DNA of 64,000 bases from Convolutriloba macropyga. Lineage: Eukaryota. A model generated the notes under the pieces. That model was given only the letters and a program-made list of their open reading frames with translations, ran no database searches and was not told the origin of the DNA. Position 1 is the stretch's first letter; each line of letters starts with the position of its first letter. Below are positions 14,653 through 62,249 of this stretch, one piece after another. The position numbers were made by a program, and so were the translations under genes. Where the stretch lies: positions 59,272,001 through 59,336,000 of the forward strand of contig NC_134468.1 of NCBI RefSeq assembly GCF_964194025.1, written 5' to 3'.

Positions 14653-17335
14653 AACAAGACGGATCGGTAATGTGCAATGGCACATAAGGCTCCGACCCCG
14701 CCCATCCACAGTTTTGGCATAATTGTCTACCAAATGAGGAACAGATAGAAAAACCCAAAAATTATTTTTTGCGAATCCCAAAAAAGCCCAAGTCTTTTTC
14801 AAAAAATTCTGTATGAACGATAAGATAACCTCCAAAACAAATAACTCAGTGGAGTAAAAATTGATGCATTAGATTGCTGTAATATGTCAATATTAAGAAA
14901 GCGAGTCAAAACGAACAGCAAAATCAAACAACAACAACAACAACAAACATTAATTACATCAAAAAAATTATGTCCCTCTTAAAAACTAAATTTAATAACA
15001 AAGTCAACATACCGTCAGATAAACCTGAAACTAAGCAAAAATAACTTATAAATCACCAGAAAACATAAGCGACCAGTCCATAAAAAGGTTTGGTAACAAT
15101 TATACAAAAAAGAACAAAAACAGAGAAGTAAAAAAAATTAACTTATTTTTTGAAACAATTAACTTCAAAGTAATAAATACCATTAGGAATCAATTAATAT
15201 TACCACAAGTTTGGGATTACCACTGCTTCTATAGAAGGGCATTAGGACCTGACCTTATTCATTTTTTAGAGCGGCTAAAAAGAACAACAAAGAACAAACA
15301 AAATTTCAATTGAAACTTGCCAGAAAACGCTGTCAAAACCGTCAAGCCAAATTTTGGCACTCAAAATATATTTGATTGCGCCTTCTTCAAACAGCTATAA
15401 TGTAGTACGTGGCCATTCATTAGTAAGACTAGGTCACAAGTAGACAAAAAAGCGAAGTGCTAAAGTATGTAATACTTTCAATTTTTTTTTCGAAACAAAA
15501 TTACATTCAATGTCATGAAAGGCATTAATTACAAAAAGAGCTATTTAAATATCGTCGTTTTTTCATGAAAAGGAAACCCTCGAGAACTGTAATTATCCAG
15601 AATATTTCTTCTTGCATCTACAAAAAGAACGTCAAATATGACAAAAATCAAATTAATTTAATTTTTTTTTGTGAAAAAGCGGTGTCGAAGCCAGTAAGGT
15701 CATAACAAAATCTTTAAAAAAAAGATTTTGGGACACCAATCCCTTTTTCCCCTTGACACCCATAATGTCATATTTGACCTGTAATCAACTAACGAGATTA
15801 GGTAACAAAAAGAAACATAAAAAGAACAAAATTGCGAAATTAAAAAAGTTTTTTTTTTTAATTTTGGAAAACGATGGGTTTGAAAGTCATAAAAGCCATC
15901 AGCTATCTGCTAATATCAGAATATCGGTTTTTCTATTCTTCCATGAAAAGCCAATGAAAGCTATCACTATACAGGAAATTTCATACGACCGAAACGACAA
16001 AGTATAAATGACAGTTAAGACAAAATTAAAAAATTCACTTGATTTCTTCAAAAAAGAGGCGTCGAGGCCATTAAAACGATGATTTATATATTTTAGGATT
16101 TTGATATGTTCAATTGTGCTTTAATTTGAATGCTAACAAGGTGACATGAGAACTGTCAATAATGTGATAATGTGACAAAATTAGAAAACGTGAAAAACTG
16201 GCAAATATCAAAACAAACAAAAATCTAAAATCTTGTAGTATCAAAGCCAGAAAACAATAATTTCAGGCTTAAAACTGCAACCGAGAATAAATGTTAACTC
16301 AGTAGAAAGAGGAAGCAGTCTTTTTTTGCTGACACTAGCTGGAAGTTGAACAAATTAAGAAAAAAATAGAGGAAAACTTAATTAAGCCATTATTTATTGA
16401 AAAGTCAATTATTTTTAAAAAAGAAACGATCATAAAATTTCAATTAAAAAACTAAATGCATTAGCCTGGAGCTGTTTAGCAAGCGAATTGTTTGGACCTA
16501 TCACTCCTGAGCTTTGATTTGATATGTTCTGTTCTTTATTATTAAAAAAAAAGTCTTTTTTTTAAAAAAAAAAAGACCGACTGATTACAACCCGATTTTT
16601 TTTGGATTGTAACAGTCCAAGAATGGCCCAAAACTACCCCTGTTAATACTTATTGTCCGTGAAGAACAATTGATTTTTCGAATGTTGTAGATATAGATAA
16701 CTTCTGAGTTGAAACTCAAAATAAATTTTGCATTTTTGATAATCAACGAGTAAAGTTAGCAAAAAACGGCAAAGTTTTAACTACAAGGCACTCTCTGCGG
16801 ACTCTGAAGTAGAAATAGCCCCCCTCTGAGTCTACAAAGATTGTATGAGTGTTGTTTGGGGGTGTACTGTAGGCAAATTTATTCAAAGTGGACTAAAGTA
16901 GCTTATTTCGTGCTGTTGTTGATAATAAAGGCTAAATTTTGAAATGTTTATCCAGATTTTTTGACCAAAAAATTAAATCAAAACAATCAAAAATGCTTGT
17001 TCGTCTTCAAAAATAAAATCAGCGACACTATTCTTAAAAATTATAACAAATTTTAGCAAAATTGACGAAAATTTAGGCAAAAATTCCGGAAAATGTGAAT
17101 AAAAACAACGTGAATTCACTCTTCTTTTCTCAGAAGTTTAAGCCTCGATAACTCCCTGTAGAAAACGAAAATTAAAAAAATCTTTTTAATTCCATATTCT
17201 ACGCTGGACGAGCTTTCTTATGATACCAGTCTCAACTCTCTACGATGAATATATCGAGCGGCGAAAATTCACGGAACAAAAAAAAACCCAGTTGAGTATA
17301 TAGTTCCTCCCCCCTCAAGAGGGTCGGAACAATAA
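14653..17335 (-). mobile_element. DINE-1/Helentron-like non-autonomous element, family A, copy 1 (~2.7 kb)
   Basis: Reverse-complement match along its length to 55924-58606. Sub-TIRs GTTCCGACCC / GGGTCGGA(G/A)C, a 3' stem-loop and a terminal CTTGTT. Confidence 0.8.
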
Positions 17336-32633: not shown

Positions 32634-35600
32634 CTAAAAACGATACGTACATCAAAAATTATTTGAAAATATTAAAGAAAATACATTTGCACTCTCAATC
32701 AGTCTGTACAATCATTTATATCCACAAGTAATTGGATGATTCATTAGAATAGCCTTATTATGAATACGTTACAACAGTAACCTTTTTCTATTTTATCTGA
32801 ACACTATGCTAGGCAGGAACTTAGATTGTGAATAAATTGCTGCCCCTAATAGAAGAGATGAGGATAAAACATACCCGGCATATTGCCGGAAAATAGCCGC
32901 CGTTGATTCCAATAAGCATGATTGGGATTGAAAGAAGAGAAGATATTGAAAAAAAAATTTTTTGTTCAAAAACATTTTTTAAGTCGGATTTATTTTGATG
33001 TCATTTCTTTGTAGTTGAACATACTTCTGTTTCTCTCAGAGAGAGTCTACAGGGGCTACAATCAATACCAATAAGCATAAGAGATGGTAACTAAGACTTA
33101 TAGGACGACGTTCAAATAGCGGGCATCTAAAATTGGGCTTTATGGGTTTATCCCGTTTCTATTTGGACTTCAATTTATTATACTGACTCTGTTCATTTTG
33201 AATTGCTTTGGTGAGCTACTGATGTTCAAATTCACTTTTAGCAGAATGAGACAAGAGAGAACCTAGCCTAGTCCGAAAGATTTCACGCAAAATGTCGAAA
33301 AAGCGGCAAAATGGTAAAGCGAAAAAAAAGTTCGACGAAGTAAAAAAACATAGCAGGACAAGTCCTGACGTACAATTCAAAAAATTTTCATAGACTACAA
33401 AAAATACTCGACCTAGAACGGACTATGAGTGAAATGGCAAAATCATTTCCAAAAAAATCAGATCAAAAAATTTAAAAAAAAACAGAAAATCAGTGTCAAA
33501 ATACGCATGTGAACAAAAAAACCACTAGCGAGAAGTTGAAATTTAATTCAAACAAAAAAACTAGGCCTAGAATGAGCTGTGAATGGATTGGGAAAGTCAT
33601 TTAGAAAAAAGCCGACCCAAAAAATTGAAAAAAAACAGTAAAAATCAGAGTGAAATTGCCGCATGTGAACAAAAAACCACTACCGAGAAACCGAATTTTT
33701 GTTCAAACATCGTTTTCTCACTACTTAAAATTAGCGCGAAAAAATTTCACGCCACAAAACCACTCGCTTTTTCGCTCCATTTCCTGTTTCGGCGTGACCA
33801 AAATCACTACTCCAATTTGACTTCAAAAATCATGAAAATGTGTGAACAGATCTTAAAAAAAAGACAGCGCCCCAAAACAATTCAAATTATTTGAATTGTA
33901 AAAAACATAGCAGGACAAGTCCTGACGTACAGTTCAAAGAATTTTCATTGACTAAACAGAAAAACTATACCTAGAATGGACTATGAGTGAATTGAGAAAA
34001 CCATGTTAGGAAAAAATCAGATAAAAAAATAAGAAAAAACAGAAAATCAATGTCAAAATAACGCATGTGAACCAAAAAAACCTCCAGCGAGAAATGAAGA
34101 ATTAATTCAAACAAAAAACTAGGTCCAGAATGAGCTGTGAATTGATTGGGAAAACTATTTAGGAAACATCCGATCCAAAAAATCGAAAAAAAACAGGAAA
34201 TCAGAGTGAAATTGCCGCATGTGAACAAAAAACCACTACCGAGAAACCGAATTTTTGTTCAAACACCGTTTTCTCACTCTACTTTAAAATTAGAGCGAAA
34301 AAAATTCACGGCGCAAAACCACTAGTTTTTTTGCTCCACTTCCTGTTTCAGCGTGACCAAAATCACTACTCCAATTTGACTTCAAAAATCATGAACATGT
34401 GTGAACAGATCTTAAAAAAAAACATAGCAGGACAAGTCCTGAAGTACAATTCAAAGAACTTTCATTGACTAAACAGAAAACTGGACCTATAACGGACTAT
34501 GAATAGATTGTAAAAACCATTTAGAAAAAAAATCCGATCCAAAAAATCGAAAAAACAGTAAAAATCAAAGTGAAATTGCCGCATGTGAACAAAAAACCAC
34601 TAGCGAAAAAGCGAATTTTTGTTCAAACACCGTTTTCTCACTCTACTTTAAATTTACAGCGAAAAAATTTCACGCCGCAAAACCACTCGTTTTTTCGCTC
34701 CACTTCCTGTTTCAGCGTGACCAAAATCACTACTCCAATTTGACTTCAGAAATCATGAAAATGTGTGAACAGATCTTAAAAAAAACATAGCCGGAAGAAT
34801 TCCGGAAACGACTCGAAGTGGAAATTCACTTAAATGCCATTCAACTACTCATCAGACAAAACGTGCCTCCACTAATTTAGGATTATCTTGAAACAAAACC
34901 ATAAAAGAAAAAAAAGAAAAAAAAATTAAATCCATTAAAATACGATCAAAAATCAGATAAAAATTTGTCATCAATTGAGACCCCGAAATAACTATCTCTG
35001 TCAAAATTACATCACCAACACAACTAGTAATTACTAAAACCACATATGAGAAGTTTTAAAAATACTTGATGCCAAATCATGAAAAAATAAGCTCTTACAA
35101 ACAACTTTGACTGAAAAACTGGAAAAAGTTAATAAATTTTTTAATATTACAAAAACACATAAATCCAAAGAAAATTTCTTTTCAGCCAATAGGGTATCCA
35201 GATGATCGCAAAACAATAGGCAAGTCATAATAGGCAAAGAAATTTATCTAGAGACAAAGAAAAACGAAAAACTGCAAAAAAATTAAGAAAAATAGTTCAA
35301 ATTTTCGCTATTTTTCGTCATATTTCTCAATAAAAAATCGCTTCATATCCACAAAACTGCAATTATTTGTTAACTAAAAATTGCTCAATTAATATGGGAG
35401 TTTCAATGCCCGTTTGAGAGAGTAAAACAAAACAACAGCCAAAAAATCGCAAAAATTAGCCCAAAAATCAGCAAAATACATGAAAAACCTCCGATTTAGC
35501 ATCAAATTCATATAAATATCAAGAAACCTTCAAACCACTACCAACACCAGCCTAAAATGAAAAGAAAATCATAATCAAACCTGTTAACCAAAAAAATTGG

Positions 35601-38600: not shown

Positions 38601-41600
38601 TTCCTTTTCAAAACACAAATTGCCGTCTTTATGGCCAAATGTTTAATATCATATGAAGCAGGCACCTTTAATTATTGTAAGCAAACTTCTTTTTTAGTGG
38701 GTTCATATTATTTGCAACCACCCAAAAGCACGTGCAATATTTTTATATAATGATTTATATTATGTAATGGCTTGTGTTGTAACTGGGGGTGCATAACGCA
38801 CTGGGGGTAAAAACGGAAAAGATCCGAAATTAGAAGTTGAACAGCCTCACGTGAACAGCCTGACGCTCATTGAAAAATTATCGAAACGAGGGAACAGGTC
38901 TTGGAAGACAGCACCCCAATCAAATTCTTTGAATTGTAACAAGACAAAAATTTTAACACCTACGTAGCAACACATCAGAACAAAAAGAAAAGACGCCACT
39001 ACAAAACCATCCTTTACATGAAGTCAAAACCCTTCAACACAAGGAAACTGGCAAAGATCTGTCAACTAATAGAAACTGTCAATCGTAAAAGAACAGAAAA
39101 AAAATAAAAACATAACCAAAAAACGTCCGACGAATTGCTCTCAAACGAGGACTGGGGGTGGGTTGAATAGGAAGGGAGGAGTGTAGAGGAGAGCGTTGCA
39201 ATTTGGGGACTGAGGGGTCAAAGCGAAAATTGGTCAGGAGAAAAAATCGCATTAAAAAACGACCACATGACTAATATAATTGCTACAAACGTCGTTTGGG
39301 AGCAATTAATTAGGAAGCTCGTGACTGAATACATCAAAGAAACATGGCAACATCAACTCAATTTGCTCCAGTTCAAACTACTTAAAACAAAAACGTTTCG
39401 CCTTTATATGTCAATTTGTTTGCAATATGTATTTTTTATGAACCATTGAATTTATCGTTAACAACTTTTTGAATACGCACAGAATGTTAAAAAGGCCAAA
39501 TTTTGTTCTAAACCCTTTCGGCTTGATGAGATATCAAGGTGCCGAGAAAGCTAATAACACATGGCTTTGAGATCGGCCAGAACTGGAACCGTACAACTAC
39601 TCGATTGCCATACTAGATAGACGCTGCGTTTTCACTGACCAACCACTCAGATCAATTGCTCATTTAGGCAAGAATGCCACACAGTCCAATCACGCCCCAA
39701 AATTCCTGTTTAAACACGGGTCAACCACTATTAAAACATAGGACTGTAAAGTCCTGAATCAAAATTCAAAAAAAATTGACAAACCGAACACTCACTCAAC
39801 CCTTGACTTGCCATCGAATAAAATCTTAAATCATTAGCAACTACCAAAAACTCGAAAAATGATTATACAAGTTGAGTGGTCCCAAAAATAAAAACCTTTG
39901 AACACCATTTTCTCGCACCACTTTGAATTTACTTCGTAACTTGTCTTGATCAGAACAAACACAATTTTTTCAAGAAACCATCAAAATGATTGAAAAATCT
40001 ACAAAAAAAAACAGCATTTGAAAACAATACAATATAGGTGAACTATAAAAACATGGGGAAAGTCCCGAAGACTCTCATTGAAAAAATAGACATTGACACA
40101 TCTATGGATGCCCCTTTGAAATCCATTAGACAACCTGTCGTCCGTGAACAAGCACTCTTGACAATGTTTTCTCACTTCATAACATAGCCGGAATAGCTGC
40201 GAAAGAATAGACCTGCGTGCCATATAATAGAGATAGAAACAGATATAGATCTAAATTGAAAAAAAAAATCGACGCCGCTCAAAAAACTAGGTAAAAAATC
40301 ATTCAGCGATAAATTAATAAAGCTTGTTAAAATTCATTCCGCAGAGGCCTCCTATTAAGGACCTTTACTGCACATATGAGTTCCTTTGACCTTAAACAAA
40401 TTCAAACTACACTTAAGTTTAGTGCAGAAGTCATTTTATTGAGTGAGGTAAGTCACGTATGATCAAAATCTAATCACGCAAATAACCTAAAAAACTTTTG
40501 CTAAAACGAGTGAGAAATGACGTCACGCGTGCAAATGCCGTTAGTGAGAGGAAGAAGTCATTCAGAAATTTGACTTTTTCAGCTTTGCTGTGTGAACAAA
40601 TGTAAAACGAAAAAAGAGCGTCAGACGACGAAACAAAAAAACATAGCAGGACAAGACCTGACGTACAATTCAAAGAATTTAAATTGACGAAACAGAAAAC
40701 TAGACCTCAAACGGACTATGAATGGATTGGAAAAACCATTTAGAAAAAAATCCGATCCAAAAAATCGAAAAAACAGTAAACATCAAAGTGAAATTGCCGC
40801 ATGTGAACAAAAAACCACTAGCGAGAAAGCGAATTTTTGCGAATTTTTGTTCAAACACCGTATTCTCACTCTAGTTTAAAATTAGAGCGAAAATTTCGGC
40901 GTGACCAAAATCACTACTCCAATTTGACTTCAAAAATCATGAAAATGTGCGAACAGATCTTAAAAAAAAACAGCGCCCCAATACAATTCAAATTCTTTGA
41001 ATTGTAAAAAACCAAGAGCACCGCAATATAGCTTCGCTCAGCTTACAGCTTCGCAGCTATAAAAACAAAAAACAAATTCACTCCTCCAAACTAAAAATGA
41101 AAACGTGGAAAACTGTCGATTTCTATATAAGCTTTCAAATGGAACACCTAAAGATACATTCATGTCCCATAAGAGAGCCAACAAGAACAGTCATTATTGA
41201 GAGACATCGAAAAAGAACAGTAGTACCAGAAAAGTATCGGAAAGTGTTCTACTGAGCTCCGCAATTTCATGAAATTCATTTAACGTGGCCAATTCAGCCT
41301 CAAAGTGAGAGGACAAAAACCAAGTTTTAACATATTAACCTAGTGCACCGGCTTATCGGTTTATCCTATTTCATATAATTTCGCCTTTTGACCTTGAACG
41401 CATTCACGTAAACTGTTGAATGAATTCTATATTCCGCTCAGTTGAAACACAGTGAGGAAGTCAGAGGTCAAAGGTATAAATGACGACTCATGTAAAACAA
41501 AGAAGAGCAGAAAGAAATTAGGAATTAAAATAGCCTTAAAATAGCCGTTTGAGTAGCTGATAGCGGATATTAAAAAGTTATTACTATTTTTTTGAAACAA

Positions 41601-53214: not shown

Positions 53215-54738
53215 ATTACTAAATGCTGCAGCAATAGAAAAATTACAATTGCTCTAAGCGTACGTTTCAGATTTATACAACGCACCTATGTTTAAGCATT
53301 GATGGCCAATATATAAGCGTTTCATTCTATGCGTTTTGATTTTCATGTAATAAATAAGAGGCTAAAATTTTGCACGAGCTCCTTTGCAGAAAAGCCTTTT
53401 CTAATGTTTAATCTTCATTGAAATTGAATAGTCTTTGGACGAAAAGCGGAATTCTTTCTTTTCCCCCAATCCCCTTCTTCCAAGACTTTTTTATGAGTAA
53501 TGTTTTTGTTTTCATAAGCCTGCTCAAACTAATGACTTTTTGCACTAATCCACTAATCATGGTTTGCATCGCCTATAACAGGCCAGACTAGCCATTATTT
53601 AATCAGTTAAAAATTTATAAATCAGTTAATTAATATAAAACCTTATAAAGGTGTAAACAATGTCAATGATAGCTCGAAAAACATCAAAATTGCCCCAAGC
53701 TTGATTTTGAAGTTGGATAAGTTAATTTTTGGAAAATTGCAGTTTTAATCATTAATTATTTTCTAACTGATTTTGGAAAATTCGAAATTTCAAAAAGGAA
53801 CAAGATGTCTATGCGAGGAACAGGGCTCACTGAACAACAAAGTATTGTCACTAAAAGAACGGTCTCAAATGCGCGAATTAAGAGGACAACTAAAATTAGT
53901 CTTCTGATAAAGGCACTTTCCTTTGGTCTGGCACTGATCTAATGCAATTCTTCAGAATTACAAATATTATTAAAACTGCTGGGGGAAAAGCAACCAGCCA
54001 TGTCCAACGAATGTGCAATCAGCCATGTGCAACAAAGCAACGGGAACTTCATTCGTAGAAACACTCGCTAGAATACGTTAGCTTCTACTGCAACAAATAC
54101 TCTTTCGACAAAAGCATTGTTCCAAATATAATGGAAAAGTTTTAATTCGTTTTAGGTATTAAAAAGTGTAAACAAAAATAAAGCTCCTTTATTACAAAAA
54201 TGGCTATATTAGGAAGCACCATATTTCAATAGAGATGAATAAGTGTAAAGAGATATGATTCTCAGCTATACAGAGATAGAACTAAAGTTAAATTTTCTTA
54301 CCAGCACTAAAAAAAGTAGCGAAGGCAACTATCTTGTCAAATTATTGTACTATGCAACTAGATGATACGCCATCAGTTCCGATAACTCATGGCGAGCAAT
54401 AAAGGTACATTATTCTGTATGTCTTGCTGATTGACATGGAACTCAGTTCATGTATAGATTACGTCACTCCGATGAATTAAGAGAGAAAATCAGGCATTAA
54501 TCAGGAATCGCTGTTTATAAGACAGATTCGCAAGATATAGGACAGAATTTCAAAATGCAAGAAGTTTTAAAATGTGGCACTGTATAAAGGAAAATCGATA
54601 TTAATCATGTTTAAAGAAATACTATCAGATCTATACGCTTGCAACATCTTTCATTTTACAACCCAAATGTACGTCAGTAATATTTCCTCAAATCTGGTAA
54701 ATTACATTCTACTACAGGTACTTCGAAACTATTCAAAT

Positions 54739-55876
54739 CTAATCACTTTCCGCAAACTGTTCCAGAATATCTTCCAAACATTTCACGTGGTTTTCATTCA
54801 ACTCAAACAGAGGTGAATATCCGGCCACGCCTTTAAAGATCTTATCCCAAGCCAACTTGAGAATTTCACTTTCGACTATTTCCTCACCAAAGAAATGCAG
54901 CCAAAATGCGAGAATAGCTTTTCTAGTCGAATCACTATACACGCCCAATTCCTGCTCAACAATGTCATACCCATATTTGGTCAACAACTCCTGCGCTTTT
55001 GTTCCTTCTTCTGTAAGCTTTTTTCCGGTTTCTGAAAACGGAATAACAATTTTCGGGTCCTTTACTAGACACAAATTGGCCTTCCTTGGAAATATGCCGA
55101 AATCTTGTGTGATGTTTAAACCGGTGAACATCTCATCCTTCGACGCGTTCGCTAGTACACCCCATGGGAAGTAAGGATTCGGATCAATTTTTCGGCCAGG
55201 AGACCAATCGCTATGACCAATCATTTTTTGAGCTTCAATTGTTGGGAACTCATTCATAAGTTGTTCACATAACAGGACGTTGGCACGCATTTGTGCTTTC
55301 GAGTATGGTTCATTTCCGTTGTTTATATTTTCGATTCCAATGGACCAACTATTCATGTTGTCCTTCATGCCCGAATAATCGCCGAATAGAAGTTCTGAGC
55401 CATTAGAGAAATTGCCGACACCAGCATGGTATGCTCTAAAATCCCTATGAACAAATTCATAAACAGTGCCGTCTTTGTCAATCACAAAATGGGCAGAAAC
55501 TTTTCCCTTGGTAAAAATATCGACTGTTCGTGAAAAATTTGCAACTGTATTATGCTGCACAATATACACTGGATATGCTTCTTGGTAAAATCTCTCTCCG
55601 TCGACCAGTTTAAACCTGTAGTTGAAATTATTACATTTTCCCGGTTGAGGGTTGACGATCTCACCGCTTTCTCCCGGTTCCAGTGGATATTTTTGCATGT
55701 CTCGCAAATACGTGGTATTGTACTCCATAATAACAGGATGGTTTTGCTCCTCAAACTTCGTACTCTCTGCAATAGTATTTTCTCTCAGGGTAACTATATA
55801 TTTGGTCTCACTACCTTGAATCGACACGAATATAACGACGAGAAATAGTAAAAGAAATTTTGAAGTTCTTCTGCTG
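54739..55876 (-). CDS. AmiD/AmpD-type N-acetylmuramoyl-L-alanine amidase (Amidase_2 plus C-terminal peptidoglycan-binding-like domain), main exon
   Basis: IVQHNT (Zn His), VSAHFVIDKDG, RAYHAGV, NSWSIGIE (catalytic Glu), IGHSD (Zn His), PGRKIDP (Zn Asp), FPW, and C-terminal LLTKYGYD...AILAFWLHF. The frame is open upstream of the GTG through the hydrophobic stretch KFLLLFLVVIFVSIQG to an acceptor at 55877. Confidence 0.93.
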
Positions 55877-55923
55877 CTAACACAGATGAAGACAGGTAAT
55901 TAAAATTATTCAAAACATGGCTT

Positions 55924-58606
55924 TTATTGTTCCGACCCTCTTGAGGGGGGAGGAACTATATACTCAAATGGGTTTTTTTTTGTTCCGTGAATTTCCGCCG
56001 ATCGATATATTCATCGTAGAGAGTTGAGACTGGTATCATTAGAAATTTTGTCCGGCGTAGAATATGGAATAAAAAAGATTTTTTTTAATTTTCGTTTTCT
56101 AAAGGGAGTTATCGAGGTTTAAACTTCTGAGAAAAGTAGAATTCACGTTGTTTTTATTCACATTTTCCGGAATTTTTGCCTAAATTTTCGTCAGTTTTGC
56201 TAAAATTTGCTATAATTTTTAAGAATAGTGTCGTTTATTTTATTTTTGAAGACGAACAAGCATTGTTGATTGTTTTAATTTAATTTTTTGGTCAAAAAAT
56301 CTGGATAAACATTTCAAAATTTAGACTTTTTCATCAAAAACAGCATGAAATAAGCTACTTTAGTCCACTTTGATTAAATTTGCCGACAGTACAACCCCCA
56401 ACAACACTCATACAATCTTTGTAGACTCAGAGGGGGGGCATTTCTACTTCAGAGTCCGCTGAGAGTGCTCTGTAGTTAAAACTTTGCCTTTTTTGCTAAC
56501 TTTACTCGTTGATTATCAAAAATGCAGAATTTATTTTGAGTTTTCAACTAACAAATTATCTATATCTACATAATTCGAAAAACCAATTGTTCCTAACGGA
56601 CAAAAAGCTTTAGCAAGGATAGTTTTGGGCCATTCTTGGACTGTTACAATCCAAAAAAAATCGGGTTGTAATCAGTCGGTCTTTTTTTTAAAAAAGACCT
56701 TTTTTTAATAATAAAGAACGGAACATATCAAATCAAAGCTCAGGAGTGATAGGTCCAACCAATTCGCTTACTAAGCAGCTCGAAGCTAATGCATTTAGTT
56801 TTTTACTTGAAAGTTTATGGTCGTTTCTTTTTTTAAAATAATTACTTTTCAATAAATAATGGCTTAATTAACTTTTCCTCTATTTTTTTCTTAATTTGTT
56901 CAACTTCCAGCTTAGTTTCAGCAAAGAAAGAATGCTTCTTCTTTCTACTGATTTAACATTTATTCTAGGTTGCAGTTTTAAGCCTGAAGTTATTGTTTTC
57001 TGGCTTTGATTGTACAAGATTTCAGATTTTTGTTTGTTTTGATATTTGCCAGTTTTTCACGTTTTCTAATTTTGTCACATTATCACATTATCACAGTTCT
57101 CATGTCACGTTATTAGCGTTCAGAATAAGGCACATATTGAAATCGTGAAAGATATACATCATCGTTTTAACGGCCTCGACGCCTCTTTCTTGAAGAAATC
57201 AATTGAATTTTAAAAATTTTGTCTAACTGTCATTTATACTTTATCGTTTCGGTCGTATGAAATTTCCTGTATAGTGATAGCTTTCATTGGCTTTTCATGG
57301 AAAAATAGAAGAACCGATATTCTGATATTAGTAGATAGCTGATGGCTTTCATGACTTTGAAAACAATCGTTCTCCAAAATTAAAAAAAAACTTTTCAATT
57401 TCGCAATTTTGTTCTTTTTATGTTTCTTTTTGTTACCTAATCTCGCTGGTTAATTACAGGTCAAATATGGTATTATGGGTGTCAAGAGAATAAAAGGGAT
57501 TGGAGTCCCAAAATCTTCTTTTAAAGAATTTGTTATGACGTTACTGGTTTTAAAGAATTTGTTATGACCTTACTGGCTTCGACACCGGTTTTTCACAAAA
57601 AAAAGTAAATTAATTTGATTTTTGTCATATTTGACGTTCTTTTTGTAGATGCAAGAAATATTCTGGATAATTGCAGGTCTCGAGGGCTTCTTTTTCATGA
57701 CTAAACGACGCTATTTAAATACTTCTTTTTGTAATTAATGCCTTTCATGACATTGAATGTAATTTTGTTTCGCAAAAAAAATTAAAAGTATTACTTTAGC
57801 ACTTCGCTTTTTTGTCTACTTGTTACTTAGTCTTACTAATGAATGGCCACGTAATACATTATAGCTGTTTGAAGAAGGCGCAATCGAATATATTTTGAGG
57901 GCCAAAATATGGCTTGACGATTTTGACAGCGTTTTCTGGCAAGTTTCAATTGAAATTTTGTTTGTTTTTTTTTGTTGTTCTTTTTAGCCGCTTTAAAAAA
58001 TGAATAAGGACAGGTCCTAATGCCCTTCTATAGAAACATTGGTAATCGTAAATTTGTAGTAATATTAATTGATTCATAATGGTATTTATTACTTTGTAGT
58101 TAACTGTTTTAAAAAAGTAAGTTAATTTTTTTACTTTACTGTTTTTGTTCTTTTTTGTATAATTGCTACCAAACCTTTTTATGGACTGGTCGCATATGTT
58201 TTCTGGTGACTTATAAGTTATTTTTGTTTAGTTTTAGGTTTATCTGACGGTATGTTGACTTTTTTATTAAATTTAGTTTTTAAGAGGGACATAAATTTTT
58301 TGATGTAATTAATGTTTGTTGTTGTTGTTGTTTGATTTTGCTGTTCGTCTTGACTCGCTTTCTTAATATTGACATATTACAGCAATCTAATGCATCAATT
58401 TTTACTCAACTGAGTTATTTGCTTTGGAGGATATCTCATCGTTCATACAGAATTTTTTGAAAAAGACTTGGACTTTTTTGGGATTCGCAAAAAATATTTT
58501 TTGGGTTTTTCTATCTGTTCCTCATTTGGTAGACAATTATGCCAAAATTGTGGATGGGCGGGGTCGGAACCTTATGTGCCATCGCACATTATCGAGCCGC
58601 CTTGTT
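55924..58606 (+). mobile_element. DINE-1/Helentron-like element, family A, copy 2
   Basis: TTATT-GTTCCGACCC (55929-55938) ... GGGTCGGAAC (58561-58570), stem-loop ATGTGC-CATC-GCACAT, terminal CTTGTT. Confidence 0.82.
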
Positions 58607-58786
58607 CTGCTTCAGATTCTTCTTTACTAATTTATCGGTTTCTTCTGTTATAACTGATAGTAAGAGCAGAAGAGTACTTAATTCGTTTTCTTCAACACTT
58701 TGTTGATCACGATACAACATTGCGTACATCAATGAGTTAACTGTACTCATAACTGTCTTAATTAACTGCCTAACGAGCTTAAACCA

Positions 58787-59690
58787 AACATAGCTGGCAG
58801 ATTGCCAGAAAATAGCCGCAAAAGATTCGTAGATCGGCAGTCTAAAAAAACAGTAAAAAAGACAGACCAAAAAAATTCGTCTTTTCATTGAAGGCTGATC
58901 TGTTCTATTTTGATTAAAAATCTGTATAAGTTATTGCTGCCTCTATTAGCTGATCTCAAATAACCTTCATTTACAGTGACACACACCCATTTGACCTTAT
59001 CTCTTTGAATTAAAGTAAACAAAAGTCAATTTCAAATTGAGGAAGTCATTTTTGAGAGTGAGGTAAGTCAAGTGTGACCAAAAATTTAATCACGCGCATG
59101 AACAAAAAAACTCGCTCCACTAAGAGCGAAAAATGACGTCACACATGCAATTCAGTTGAAATTGCATGAACGAATGAACAAAAAGTGGCTGTGACGTCAT
59201 ATGGTCGTAACAAAAATCATGACGACGAAATAAAAAAACATAGCAGGACAAGTCCTGACGTACAATTCAAAGAATTTTCATTGACTAAAAAAACTAGACC
59301 TAAAACGGACTATGAATGGATTGGAATAACCATTTAGAAAAAAATCCTATCCAAAAAATCGAAAAAAGAGTAAAAATCAAAGTGAAATTGCCGCATGTGA
59401 ACAAAAAACCACTAGCGAGAAAGCGAATTTTTGCTCAAACACCATTTTCTCACTCTACTTTAAATTTAGAGCAAAAAAATTTCACGCCGCAAAACCACTC
59501 GCTTTTTCGCTCCATTTCCTGTTTCGGCGTGACCAAAATCACCACTCCAATTTGACTTCAAAAATCATGAAAATGTGTGAACAGATCTTAAAAAAAAAGA
59601 CAGCGCCCCAATACAATTCAAATTCTTTGAATTGTAAAAAACCAAGCGAAGGCCAATAATAGCCCCAGCTATCGCTGTGCGGCTATTAAA
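58787..59690 (-). mobile_element. DINE-1/Helentron-like family B element, both termini present
   Basis: AACATAGCTGGCAGATTGCCAGAAAATAGCCGC ... AATAGCCCCAGCTATCGCTGTGCGGCTATT. Confidence 0.8.
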
Positions 59691-59902
59691 AAAGACCCCA
59701 ACTTTACTCGGTCAATTTCACGACTCTTGCTATTAGACAACTTGATTAATCTGTAAGGTTAAATTACACACTTAAATGCTTTTTGCCATGTTTACCGAAG
59801 ACCAGCTTTCTTTACAATGGGTACCGTGAGAAAATCATTTTACATTTACTCGTTGATTATTGATAACAGACTCGTGCAAGTCTGCGCATGCAGTGAACTT
59901 AC

Positions 59903-59946
59903 CAAGTGAAAGTCCGCGATGGATATGGGTTCAATGAGCGCCCCAT
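59903..59946 (-). CDS. Candidate first coding exon of the amidase (MGRSLNPYPSRTFT)
   Basis: ATG at 59946 and a strong donor TG|GTAAGT. Phase 2 matches the acceptor at 55877. An acceptor-like TTCTTTTTTCAG precedes it at 59961. Confidence 0.45.
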
Positions 59947-62249
59947 TATGAAACAGAATTCTGAAAAAAGAACTTTGTGTAAATTCAACCAGTAAGCTCG
60001 CATTGTTCTATGCGTGCCGCAGAAAAGCCCACATTGGCATTGAAAAGCCTATATTCAATACATGTAAGTACCAAATCTGAAATGATGCCGCCGAAAAGTT
60101 TGCCTTGATTTCGCTTCAGTTCATATCGTCTTCCTTTAAAACTTTTAACGGTAAAAAATTAAAGGACATTAACAATTTCACGTTCCTTTTGAGCGACACC
60201 CAACTTACAGTGAACTGTGTTTGATAATGCGTGCTTCTAACAGGAATTTCATTGTGGTCAAAAATAATAAATCACCAGAGAAATAATGAACACTGAAAAA
60301 ACTGGAACAGCCCAATTGTGACAGAGCTAAAACTATTAAAAGAATTGGACGCCGAACTCAAAACTCCTCAATAAATCTTAGAAGAGAAATTATCAATGTT
60401 GTTAATCTTAGATTGACTTCTACTTCAAGTTGAAAGCCACTGACACTCTGCTTTCCGCAAGCAGTACAATAACACAAAAAAACTTGAAATTTGGTCTTGA
60501 AATTTAAAAAACATTAAAAACATGTTTTGCGTTCTGTATCCTGAAAATCATCAAAACTAATTTTCAAACTTCCCCTGCATTATGTCAACCTTTCTCATCA
60601 GAGCATATTTAAAGCCCGGAAAATCCGCTTCAAGGATTCAATTGCTTTCCAATTATTTGTCTTGTTTTGATTTTGGCTAAAGCCACCAGCCTGGCAACAA
60701 ACTTGACCGTTCGCCTGCCACTTGTTTGCCGCGCAAAAAGATAAAAAGAATAATAATTAGAACGAAGTAAACAAAAAACCTATAGAGATGAGAATAACTT
60801 CACGGGAAGAACGGAAAGAAAGATTCAACAAAAAATGACAACAAAAAAAATTGCGCAATTACAATTCAACCAATTCAATAAACCGCAGATATGGATCTCA
60901 GGCAGATTTGATTAAAGGAGATGTTTTCTTCTAAATAAAGCAGTTGAACGTTCGTGTTGAATTAATAATAAAAATATGAGTTATGAAACTAACAAAATAA
61001 GAGCTCTAGGAAAAACACAAAAAACCCAAAGTAAATTAACTCACGACAAAGCAACTGGAGTTAGAACAGTAATGATAGAAAAGAATAGCAAATTCAAAGA
61101 GGCTTTGGGAAGGAATTGTGTTGAACTTTTTCAAAGACTAAAATTTAACACAACAGAAAACAATCTCTACAACCATAGACCATACTGATTCATTTATGCA
61201 ATTTAGAGAAAAATTACTGATGTCAAAAGTTCTCGCAGAAAAACTTGAGGAACTCCAGAAATCAAAGTTTTTTTGAACAAACAGATTTCGCAAATGTCGG
61301 AGCCGTGAGCTTTGGGTAAAAACAGAAGAGCAGTTACATTCGAAGATAGCGATAAAGATTTTCAAATATTGTTTTTGAAAAAAAAAGGGAAATACGGAAG
61401 TCTCGAACATCAAACTCACTTTTTAAAAACATACGCAAAAGTTCATTTTGAGAACAAATAATGTCGAAATTACAACAAATCGTGCAGACGAAACAATGAC
61501 GTCTCAATTAATTCCAACAAAGACAAAGGAGATTCAAAAATGCTATGGAGGAACAGCAAAGAAACAGGGGACAACAGCTGCGGTCAAATTCAGAATATAA
61601 ATAAATTAAGTCAATATTCGCCCAGTTAGTTAAAAGCTTCGACTATTTGGCGATTGATATGTCGATTGGCATCATGACAAAATACACTAGACTCGCCATT
61701 TTTATACTACGGCAGATCATCAAATGGAAATACGAACAGGCGCATAACTAAAACATTTTCTTAAAATCACATCAACGTCAATAAAATATCACAATCTCAA
61801 CAAATAATTTGTTCAAGCGCAACCAGGAATCAAAAACATTTTTCGATCGACTGCTTCTTAATAACAGTCGCAAACAAATCAGTAACAGTGAAAAAAAGAA
61901 CACGACAAAAAGTTATTCCGAAAACCTGTTTTCTCTATCACTTCTAAAAAAGGATTTCATTACCTGTGCCTACAAATTTTTCTAACATCTGAGCTGCTCT
62001 AGCGCGAATAAAAAGATTCTGCAAATTTAACTTCAAAATATCTTTCAAAATCAAAATGTATCCGCAGATCTTTAAACAGGAGGAGGTCCAAATAAGACCC
62101 AATTTCTATGAGAAGTAAAACGAGAAGCTTTATAAATGCATACGTAGATGCTCTGCGCTGCTGAAAACTTTTGTTCACTGGTTGAACAAAACTAATTAGC
62201 AAGAAACAACAAAATCAAGGCTGAAGAATAATTGGTCAAACTCAAATAA

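Follow-up and report, generated by a model that had tools for sequence, protein, structure and literature searches.

The window analyzed here is a 64,000-nucleotide (nt) stretch of the genome of the acoel Convolutriloba macropyga (contig NC_134468.1, positions 59,272,001 to 59,336,000), and it carries on its minus strand a gene for an N-acetylmuramoyl-L-alanine amidase. The best explanation of this locus, and one that we consider likely, is that it holds a horizontally acquired amidase gene of the AmiD/AmpDh2 type that is transcribed by the host, cis-spliced, and routed to the endoplasmic reticulum (ER), and whose intron was later inflated by repeats. According to this explanation, a bacterial amidase gene from a relative of Cardinium and the Amoebophilaceae would have become fixed in chromosome 1 of C. 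macropyga, where a host-side promoter would drive its transcription. A short 5′ exon would supply an ATG and 14 and two-thirds codons, cis-spliced across 4026 nt to an acceptor of the NAGNAG type. A basic n-region, a hydrophobic core, and cleavage after Gly36 would then route the enzyme to the ER and onward for secretion or delivery to a lumen, where it would cleave stem peptides from peptidoglycan. Originally ~435 nt long, the intron would later have been swollen by nonautonomous rolling-circle elements of a Helentron/HINE-like kind (an element A and an element B with a further element, C, nested in it), which would be spliced out with it. If so, the locus would display the steps that turn a bacterial open reading frame (ORF) into an animal gene: the start codon is lost, an acceptor appears close to the old start, a start exon is recruited, the lipobox is lost while the leader is retained, and the intron later swells.

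The two-exon gene model

The coding sequence is made up of the following parts, with positions given in window coordinates.

54739-55827, minus strand: amidase ORF with a GTG start, 362 codons (ORF translation).
54739-55876, minus strand: coding part of exon 2 including the stop codon, comprising leader, linker, amidase domain, and C-terminal helical domain.
55871-55879, minus strand: tandem acceptor TAG/CAG/CAG of the NAGNAG type behind a pyrimidine-rich stretch (sequence).
55877-59902, minus strand: intron of 4026 nt in isoform X1, the X2 acceptor lying 3 nt further on (splice model and RefSeq lengths).
59897-59902, minus strand: GTAAGT splice donor (sequence).
59903-59946, minus strand: coding portion of the 5′ exon, an ATG and the 41 nt after it, which specify MGRSLNPYPSRTF T and codon positions 1 and 2 of Cys15.

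Upstream of the GTG codon, the frame encodes ...SSRRTSKFLLLFLVVIFVSIQGS, basic and then hydrophobic, and stays open to a TAA at 55900-55902 without an in-frame ATG, as read in the sequence and recomputed. The first-pass annotation of this DNA, made from the letters alone, had described this extension and its want of a lipobox Cys, the tandem acceptor, and a 44-nt ATG exon with a GTAAGT donor that joins in frame to give 393 amino acids (aa). All of this held on rereading: the coordinates were correct, two sites of the acceptor matched RefSeq isoforms X1 and X2, and the recomputed protein equaled XP_075247905.1. Splicing from 59903 to 55876 yields 1182 nt (393 aa), and splicing from 59903 to 55873 yields 392 aa, so that the first two sites of the tandem acceptor, which sits 48 nt upstream of the old GTG, explain the 393-aa X1 and the 392-aa X2.

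The top database match was the RefSeq entry “N-acetylmuramoyl-L-alanine amidase AmiD-like isoform X2” of C. macropyga (99% identity, 392 aa), annotated on the window's contig. XP_075247905.1 (393 aa, X1) and XP_075247913.1 (392 aa, X2) are exactly the spliced model and differ by the tandem acceptor only; X2 begins MGRSLNPYPSRTFTC-RRTSKF, and X1 has an additional Ser. The 90% cluster contains X1, X2, and three further proteins, of 362 or 329 aa, that were called in prokaryote style. The gene model is thus already public in RefSeq, with two of the three tandem acceptors used. As a rule, the NCBI pipeline gives a gene alternative isoforms only where transcripts back them. We infer that the gene is transcribed, that the junction is used, and that the product is secreted and enzymatically active. 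A directional poly(A) RNA-seq run of C. macropyga, ERR13669978, has been reported in the genome note (PMC13650328).

The caution attached to the original exon call, that a phase match has a 1-in-3 chance of being accidental, was well placed. Within 8 kb upstream on the same strand, we found five GTRAGT donors, two of which (with ATGs at 59946 and 60252) have an in-phase open ATG, and for this reason the phase match of exon 1 is weak when taken alone. The exon-1 model is lifted above chance because it is identical to RefSeq isoforms X1 and X2: the 44 nt encode the N terminus of both. The second haplotype carries the exon unchanged, and it occurs only once in the genome. We considered whether exon 1 had been captured from a duplicated host gene and rejected this, as exon 1 and the 650 nt upstream of it have no other copy in the genome.

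The same annotation had spoken of intron gain. An intron of 4026 nt does form part of the RefSeq-identical model, but the event is better described as the recruitment of a start exon 5′ to the transferred ORF. The part of the amidase that is homologous to bacterial proteins starts near X1 residue 68 to 70 and contains no intron; the intron is therefore the mark of start-exon recruitment upstream of the transferred frame, not an interruption of the bacterial-homologous part. Overall, the first reading of the locus was largely right, and we reframe it as start-exon recruitment, possibly with the donor's signal retained.

An enzyme of the AmiD/AmpDh2 type

Two domains were recognized in the spliced protein.

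55174-55572, minus strand: Amidase_2 catalytic domain, X1 residues 117-249 (Pfam PF01510).
54742-55023, minus strand: C-terminal helical domain, X1 residues ~300-393 (predicted local distance difference test [pLDDT] score of >90 and fold match).

The Amidase_2 match (PF01510) scored 95.8 bits against a cut-off of 26 (E = 3.3e-27) and 98.7 bits in the genome scan; the NCBIfam AmpD match was below threshold. Sequence matches in the PDB were to AmpDh2, AmiD, AmpD, and AmpDh3. In an alignment of 34 homologues, H236, K244, and D246 were invariant and H123 and E197 were at least 90% conserved, and the conserved residues of the acoel amidase align to the AmpDh2 motifs. From what is known of AmpD and AmiD, we take these residues to be the His/His/Asp zinc ligands and the catalytic Glu and Lys.

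The AlphaFold model had a mean pLDDT of 88.5, with residues 60 to 393 confident and residues 1 to 54 unstructured. Its top structural matches over both domains were Escherichia coli AmiD and Pseudomonas aeruginosa AmpDh2/AmpDh3 (target-normalized template modeling [TM] scores of 0.67 to 0.73), and the whole-chain alignments to AmiD (3d2y and 2bh7) spanned 304 to 312 columns at a target-normalized TM score of 0.73; animal peptidoglycan recognition proteins (PGRPs) matched weakly. The C-terminal helical domain corresponds to the peptidoglycan-binding domain of AmiD and AmpDh2, and the protein thus has the two-domain architecture of these enzymes, an amidase followed by a C-terminal peptidoglycan-binding-like domain. 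The model therefore predicts an intact AmiD/AmpDh2-type zinc amidase with active site and fold preserved, which is presumably active. A six-frame scan of the 1.18-Gb genome revealed no other Amidase_2 domain, and hence no PGRP, although short exons could escape such a scan.

Relationship to Cardinium and the Amoebophilaceae

We placed the protein in a maximum-likelihood tree of 60 sequences, which did not include the aphid amiD product discussed below. The acoel amidase fell into a clade of eight sequences (Shimodaira-Hasegawa-like approximate likelihood ratio test [SH-aLRT] support of 99) together with Cardinium, an Amoebophilaceae metagenome-assembled genome, and metagenomic relatives. Its sisters were two marine-metagenome sequences with 54% and 52% identity, and its nearest named relatives were lipoprotein amidases of Cardinium and the Amoebophilaceae (48 to 52% identity over ~84% of the length), one Cardinium copy being named as plasmid-borne. 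Among the database matches, no animal homologue was closer than 46% identity. As judged by sequence, the donor is a relative of Cardinium and the Amoebophilaceae, which are intracellular Bacteroidota.

The nearest relatives lie on short marine-metagenome contigs (1300 and 2334 bp) that are AT-rich, encode no signal peptide, and have flanks without credible ORFs; they may come from other marine eukaryotes or degenerate symbionts rather than from typical bacteria. Amidases labeled Aphelenchoides avenae and Nezara viridula formed a clade of their own (SH-aLRT of 96), separate from that of the acoel, and the Nezara protein has a eukaryote-style hydrophobic N terminus without a lipobox. These two may represent independent transfers or symbiont contamination.

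Literature searches combining acoel, amidase, and horizontal gene transfer returned no description of this gene or of its transfer. A study of immunity in C. macropyga, with its 20 supplementary files, mentions neither amidase nor peptidoglycan, nor does the main text of the preprint on symbiosis in this species, and the supplements of the C. longifissura paper contain no muramoyl or Amidase_2 term. The acoel immune study considered neither PGRPs nor the amidase gene.

Integration in the host chromosome

The amidase gene is present in a single copy in the 1.18-Gb assembly, on an 89-Mb chromosome-scale scaffold that is chromosome 1 of C. macropyga. From four sequencing runs of one study, we placed contigs on 54350-60300; the runs behave as genomic DNA. 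Depth was even over the gene and 59723-60300 (~45 to 75 in three runs and 5 to 7 in the fourth) and enormous over the repeats (55943-59722), and in one run, the depth of 44 to 53 over the gene equaled that of 42 to 48 over the unique flank. The unique contigs stopped at 55948 and restarted at 59671, and these genomic DNA contigs contained no joint of 59903 to 55876.

A second assembly (a 604-kb contig in the European Nucleotide Archive), which probably represents the other haplotype, was collinear with the locus over 12 kb at 98.3% identity and had the same intron repeats. The two assemblies agreed exactly in exon 1, at the donor and acceptor sites, and in the unique sequence at either end of the intron. 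The coding differences amounted to two synonymous changes plus D153E and E384Q (in the numbering of the 386-codon frame). Host-specific high-copy-number repeats begin 47 nt from the acceptor, and the window includes, at other places, a trypsin-like exon and an ORF with an IQ motif. The physical integration of the amidase gene in an animal chromosome is solid: contamination or misassembly was ruled out by the DNA depth, the two haplotypes, the host repeats, and the host genes. True integration, which had been argued from the presumed intron and ER signal, was borne out on these other grounds, namely, the single copy, the flank-equal depth, the presence in both haplotypes, and the surrounding host repeats and genes.

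A related reading takes the gene for a silent or decaying insertion of bacterial DNA, or for an assembly contaminant, with a coincidental match of exon 1; it strikes us as very improbable. The sequencing runs that we examined contain DNA only, and the 1-in-3 phase match, with an in-phase ATG at two of the five strong upstream donors, would fit coincidence. Against this stand the 386-codon open frame with all catalytic residues kept at 54% identity to the nearest relative, the occurrence of the gene at host depth in both haplotypes, its position between host repeats and genes, and the exact match of the RefSeq isoforms.

Directly 3′ of the stop codon, the 139 nt at 54600-54738 differ strongly between the haplotypes or assemblies, with 19 substitutions and 76 indel columns, and the DNA runs contain heterozygous variants at 54580, 54587, and 54600.

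The leader peptide

The N terminus of exon 2 contributes one further feature.

55819-55857, minus strand: hydrophobic core FLLLFLVVIFVSI, X1 residues 22-34, putative signal peptide (composition).

We judged the leader by heuristic criteria for an ER signal (a basic n-region, an h-region of 7 to 15 residues, and small residues at −3 and −1) and found all of these features. The n-region, X1 residues 1 to 21, has five K/R and no D/E; no other stretch of the protein is as hydrophobic as the 13-aa h-region; and SIQG|S conforms to the −3/−1 rule, with cleavage favored after Gly36. Six N-glycosylation sequons lie downstream of the leader. By the same heuristic, 13 hydrophobic residues would suit a cleavable signal better than a membrane anchor.

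Were the hydrophobic segment left uncleaved, it would serve as a type II signal anchor, and the amidase would be tethered to the membrane with its catalytic domain lumenal or outside the cell, functionally mimicking the outer-membrane tether of bacterial AmiD. The 21-aa n-region, with a charge of +5 and no acidic residue, favors an N-in orientation, and the bacterial ancestors were membrane-tethered lipoproteins. The 13-residue core is, however, short for a membrane span, and the small-residue SIQG|S that follows it fits the −3/−1 rule. We hold such an anchor to be quite improbable and retain the cleavable signal as the favored reading.

The members of the bacterial clade start with lipoprotein signals of the form L-G/S-x-A-C (…LGTAC, …LSVAC, and …LGIAC). 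The acoel leader lacks a lipobox: it ends …VSIQGS without a Cys, and Cys15 precedes the hydrophobic core. Detectable bacterial homology begins at a YLRDM motif near X1 residue 70. The hydrophobic segment lies within exon 2, contiguous with the bacterial ORF, and the aligner put the acoel core on the bacterial signal peptides and the tandem acceptor close to the bacterial start codon, although hydrophobic segments align easily. Because the core aligns with the bacterial signals and the acceptor falls near the bacterial start, it is plausible that the leader is the donor's own signal, which may have lost its lipobox and had its start codon replaced by a splice acceptor. The earlier proposal of ER targeting in place of the lipoprotein signal thus stands as far as the n/h/c layout without a lipobox Cys is concerned; that the one replaced the other is uncertain, given that the core aligns with donor signals.

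The 5′ end of the transcript and the spliced leader

Two further features upstream of the coding exon bear on where the mRNA begins.

59961-59970, minus strand: acceptor-like sequence cttttttcag, ending 14 nt upstream of the ATG (inference only).
60209-60252, minus strand: a further 44 nt that open with ATG and run into a GTAAGT donor, in phase with exon 1; they might serve as an alternative first exon encoding MKFLLEARIIKHSS....

In Symsagittifera roscoffensis, which belongs to the same family as Convolutriloba, ~30% of genes are trans-spliced (PMC9911081). We searched the C. macropyga genome with the 32-nt leader of S. roscoffensis, which has no ATG, and found 2612 places with no more than three mismatches (reversed control, 0); the first 100 places listed were all exact. 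At six leader loci that we read, the leader was followed by varied ordinary sequence with no GT donor, and three of them shared the continuation gatgagccagcgaggcatg. These genomic copies look like retro-copied trans-spliced mRNAs or a retroelement carrying the leader. The sequence cttttttcag is a candidate site for the addition of a spliced leader or for an upstream noncoding exon. Addition of the leader at 59960 would account for the MGRS start of the RefSeq protein, just as use of cttttttcag would account for the disuse of an in-frame ATG at 60001-60003. A short-read annotation would miss leader addition at 59960 or at the tandem acceptor.

The main mRNA might then receive a spliced leader at 55871-55879, or start inside the intron, and encode a leaderless cytosolic enzyme of 329 aa from Met65. 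Such a form would act on soluble muropeptides, as AmpD does, and it could coexist with the secreted form by dual targeting. Trans-splicing in the same family and the abundance of the leader in the genome support this idea, as do the strength of the acceptor (an AG behind a pyrimidine tract), the position of Met65 as the first ATG in exon 2, and the absence of a leader from the nearest metagenomic relatives. Nevertheless, the RefSeq entries in the 90% cluster are only the two cis-spliced isoforms, and the sequence before Met65 has kept its open frame and hydrophobic segment intact, and identical in both haplotypes, something that would be unnecessary if they were untranslated. We consider it unlikely that the leaderless form is the main product.

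A bolder extension, to which we likewise assign little probability, is that the amidase is the acoel's only protein with an Amidase_2/PGRP fold and takes the place of the catalytic PGRPs of other animals, in a lineage reported to be without conserved immune signaling pathways, possibly dual-targeted through cis-splicing versus leader splicing. If this were true, the choice between digesting walls or damping immunity outside the cell and clearing muropeptides inside it would be made at a single splice site.

Several observations weigh against a secreted, cis-spliced host protein as our preferred reading of the locus. An in-frame ATG at 60001-60003, unused in RefSeq, precedes the chosen start without an intervening stop codon, and the stretch at 60209-60252 is a second in-phase candidate for a 44-nt ATG exon; among the RefSeq entries of the 90% cluster, there was no isoform with a start at 60252. 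The tandem acceptor could also take an ATG-less leader, in a family where trans-splicing occurs and in a genome where the leader is abundant. The 21-residue n-region is long for a signal peptide, and the signal call rests on a heuristic. All four sequencing runs are genomic DNA, so that expression and splicing rest on RefSeq, whose Gnomon models are predictions. Finally, the four coding differences between haplotypes are too few for a selection test, and the adjacent unique noncoding DNA has equally low diversity.

Repeats in the intron

Read from the acceptor toward the donor, the intron has the following parts.

55877-55923, minus strand: unique 3′ end of the intron with a pyrimidine-rich tract (single-copy contig to 55948; haplotypes identical).
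55924-58606, plus strand: element A, 2683 bp, noncoding, Helentron/HINE-like, antisense to the gene (genomic copies).
58607-58785, no strand: spacer of 179 nt in neither element (A copies stop at 58606, and B copies start at 58786).
58786-59693, minus strand: element B, 908 bp, noncoding, Helentron/HINE-like, in the same sense as the gene (genomic copies).
59233-59648, minus strand: element C, ~402 to 410 bp, nested inside B (inverted repeat and contig joints).
59694-59902, minus strand: unique 5′ part of the intron, 209 nt (single-copy contig from ~59671; haplotypes identical).

Two repeat families with sharp, reproducible ends therefore account for 2683 + 908 = 3591 nt of the 4026-nt intron. 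The 179-nt spacer is probably original intron sequence, and the intron minus its repeats measures ~435 nt (47 + 179 + 209). Where the first-pass annotation had counted two complete Helentron-like elements filling ~3.6 of 4.0 kb, the extent (3591 nt) and the structural hallmarks agreed, but the elements proved to be A and a composite, B with C nested in it.

Element A has the 5′ repeat TTGTTCCGACCC, the 3′ subterminal repeat GGGTCGGAAC, the hairpin ATGTGC-catc-GCACAT, and a tail ending in CCTTGTT. About 40 copies were scored (of 8400 first-look candidates), with 90 to 96% identity and the same two ends. Element B has the 5′ inverted repeat TAATAGCCGC, the 3′ subterminal repeat GCGGCTATT, the hairpin CTGGCA-atc-TGCCAG, and the tail CTATGTT; more than 40 copies were scored (of 7038 first-look candidates), with 94 to 98% identity and the same ends. 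Element C, with the 5′ palindrome TACAATTCAAA-ttc-TTTGAATTGTA, the 3′ repeat CTTTGAATTGTA, the hairpin CAGGAC-tt-GTCCTG, and the tail CTATGTT, lies 45 to 57 nt inside the 5′ end of B, and other genomic copies of B are without it (their joints skip 402 to 410 nt).

The hallmarks of Helentron-associated nonautonomous elements are 5′ and 3′ subterminal inverted repeats and a stem-loop downstream of the 3′ repeat (PMC4067079). Elements A, B, and C show the repeats and stem-loop of HINE/DINE-1 elements, and A and B have a short tail ending in TGTT. The boundaries of A and B are T-rich, with a T following 8 of 10 A copies, which would be compatible with insertion at a TT dinucleotide, and no target-site duplication was evident at them. 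Helitron_like_N Rep domains were found at no fewer than 90 places in the genome. We use “Helentron-like” for A, B, and C as a structural label, based on these sequence features.

The window contains a second full-length element A at 14653-17335, in reverse orientation and 91.6 to 93.3% identical, which is without one unit of the 29-bp tandem duplication found at 57519-57576. The unit of element C (~370 bp) recurs in tandem arrays at 33333-34785 and also at 40427-41016, as satellite-like DNA of Helentron-like origin. A 21-nt motif (core ACTCGTTGAT or ACTCGGTCAA plus flanks) has one occurrence in element A (56498-56518) and two in the 209 nt of unique sequence at the 5′ end of the intron (59700-59720 and 59842-59862).

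Comparison with known systems

The acoel protein shares with E. coli AmiD (2BH7 and 3D2Y) and P. aeruginosa AmpDh2/AmpDh3 (4BJ4 and 4BXJ) a common two-domain layout, the zinc ligands, and the Glu/Lys pair. It differs from them in that identity in the fold alignments is 20 to 28%, the lipobox cysteine is absent, ~67 N-terminal residues have no bacterial counterpart, and the gene is spliced and resides in an animal. In the amidases of Cardinium and the Amoebophilaceae, the linker before YLRDM is ~17 residues shorter than in the acoel protein. Catalytic animal PGRPs, such as Drosophila PGRP-LB/SC and mammalian PGLYRP2, have the same Amidase_2/T7-lysozyme fold, perform the same reaction, and are secreted, but they form a different subfamily of vertical animal descent, whereas the acoel protein groups with bacterial AmiD-type enzymes.

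Like HINE/DINE-1 elements (PMC4067079), elements A, B, and C are noncoding and present in very high copy number, with inverted or subterminal repeats, a stem-loop, and T-rich boundaries, and an internal unit of the elements likewise occurs in tandem arrays. As used here, the label “Helentron-like” covers both Helentron and Helitron2 types.

Captured bacterial cell-wall enzymes, such as those encoded by aphid amiD, ldcA, and rlpA and by tick dae2, are among the clearest examples of transferred genes taking on a host function. The type of transfer described here is already known, and aphid amiD is its closest parallel. In Acyrthosiphon pisum, amiD was horizontally acquired, as were ldcA and rlpA1-5, and at least one product of these genes, RlpA4, carries a eukaryotic signal peptide (PMC8689515). 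Aphid amiD, like the acoel gene, encodes a bacterial AmiD-type amidase, lies in an animal nuclear genome, and is annotated as an expressed host gene. The acoel case differs in its host, a member of the Xenacoelomorpha, in its Cardinium/Amoebophilaceae-like donor, and in that expression and function are so far predicted. To our knowledge, this acoel has no bacteriocyte symbiosis; its symbionts are Tetraselmis algae, which are without a peptidoglycan wall of that kind. Judging by the different hosts, and with the aphid sequence outside our tree, the two transfers were presumably independent. The lineage Xenacoelomorpha has been reported to be without conserved immune signaling pathways (PMC12849515). 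Beside the aphid gene, the acoel amidase would be a captured cell-wall enzyme in the Xenacoelomorpha, a key lineage for early bilaterian evolution.

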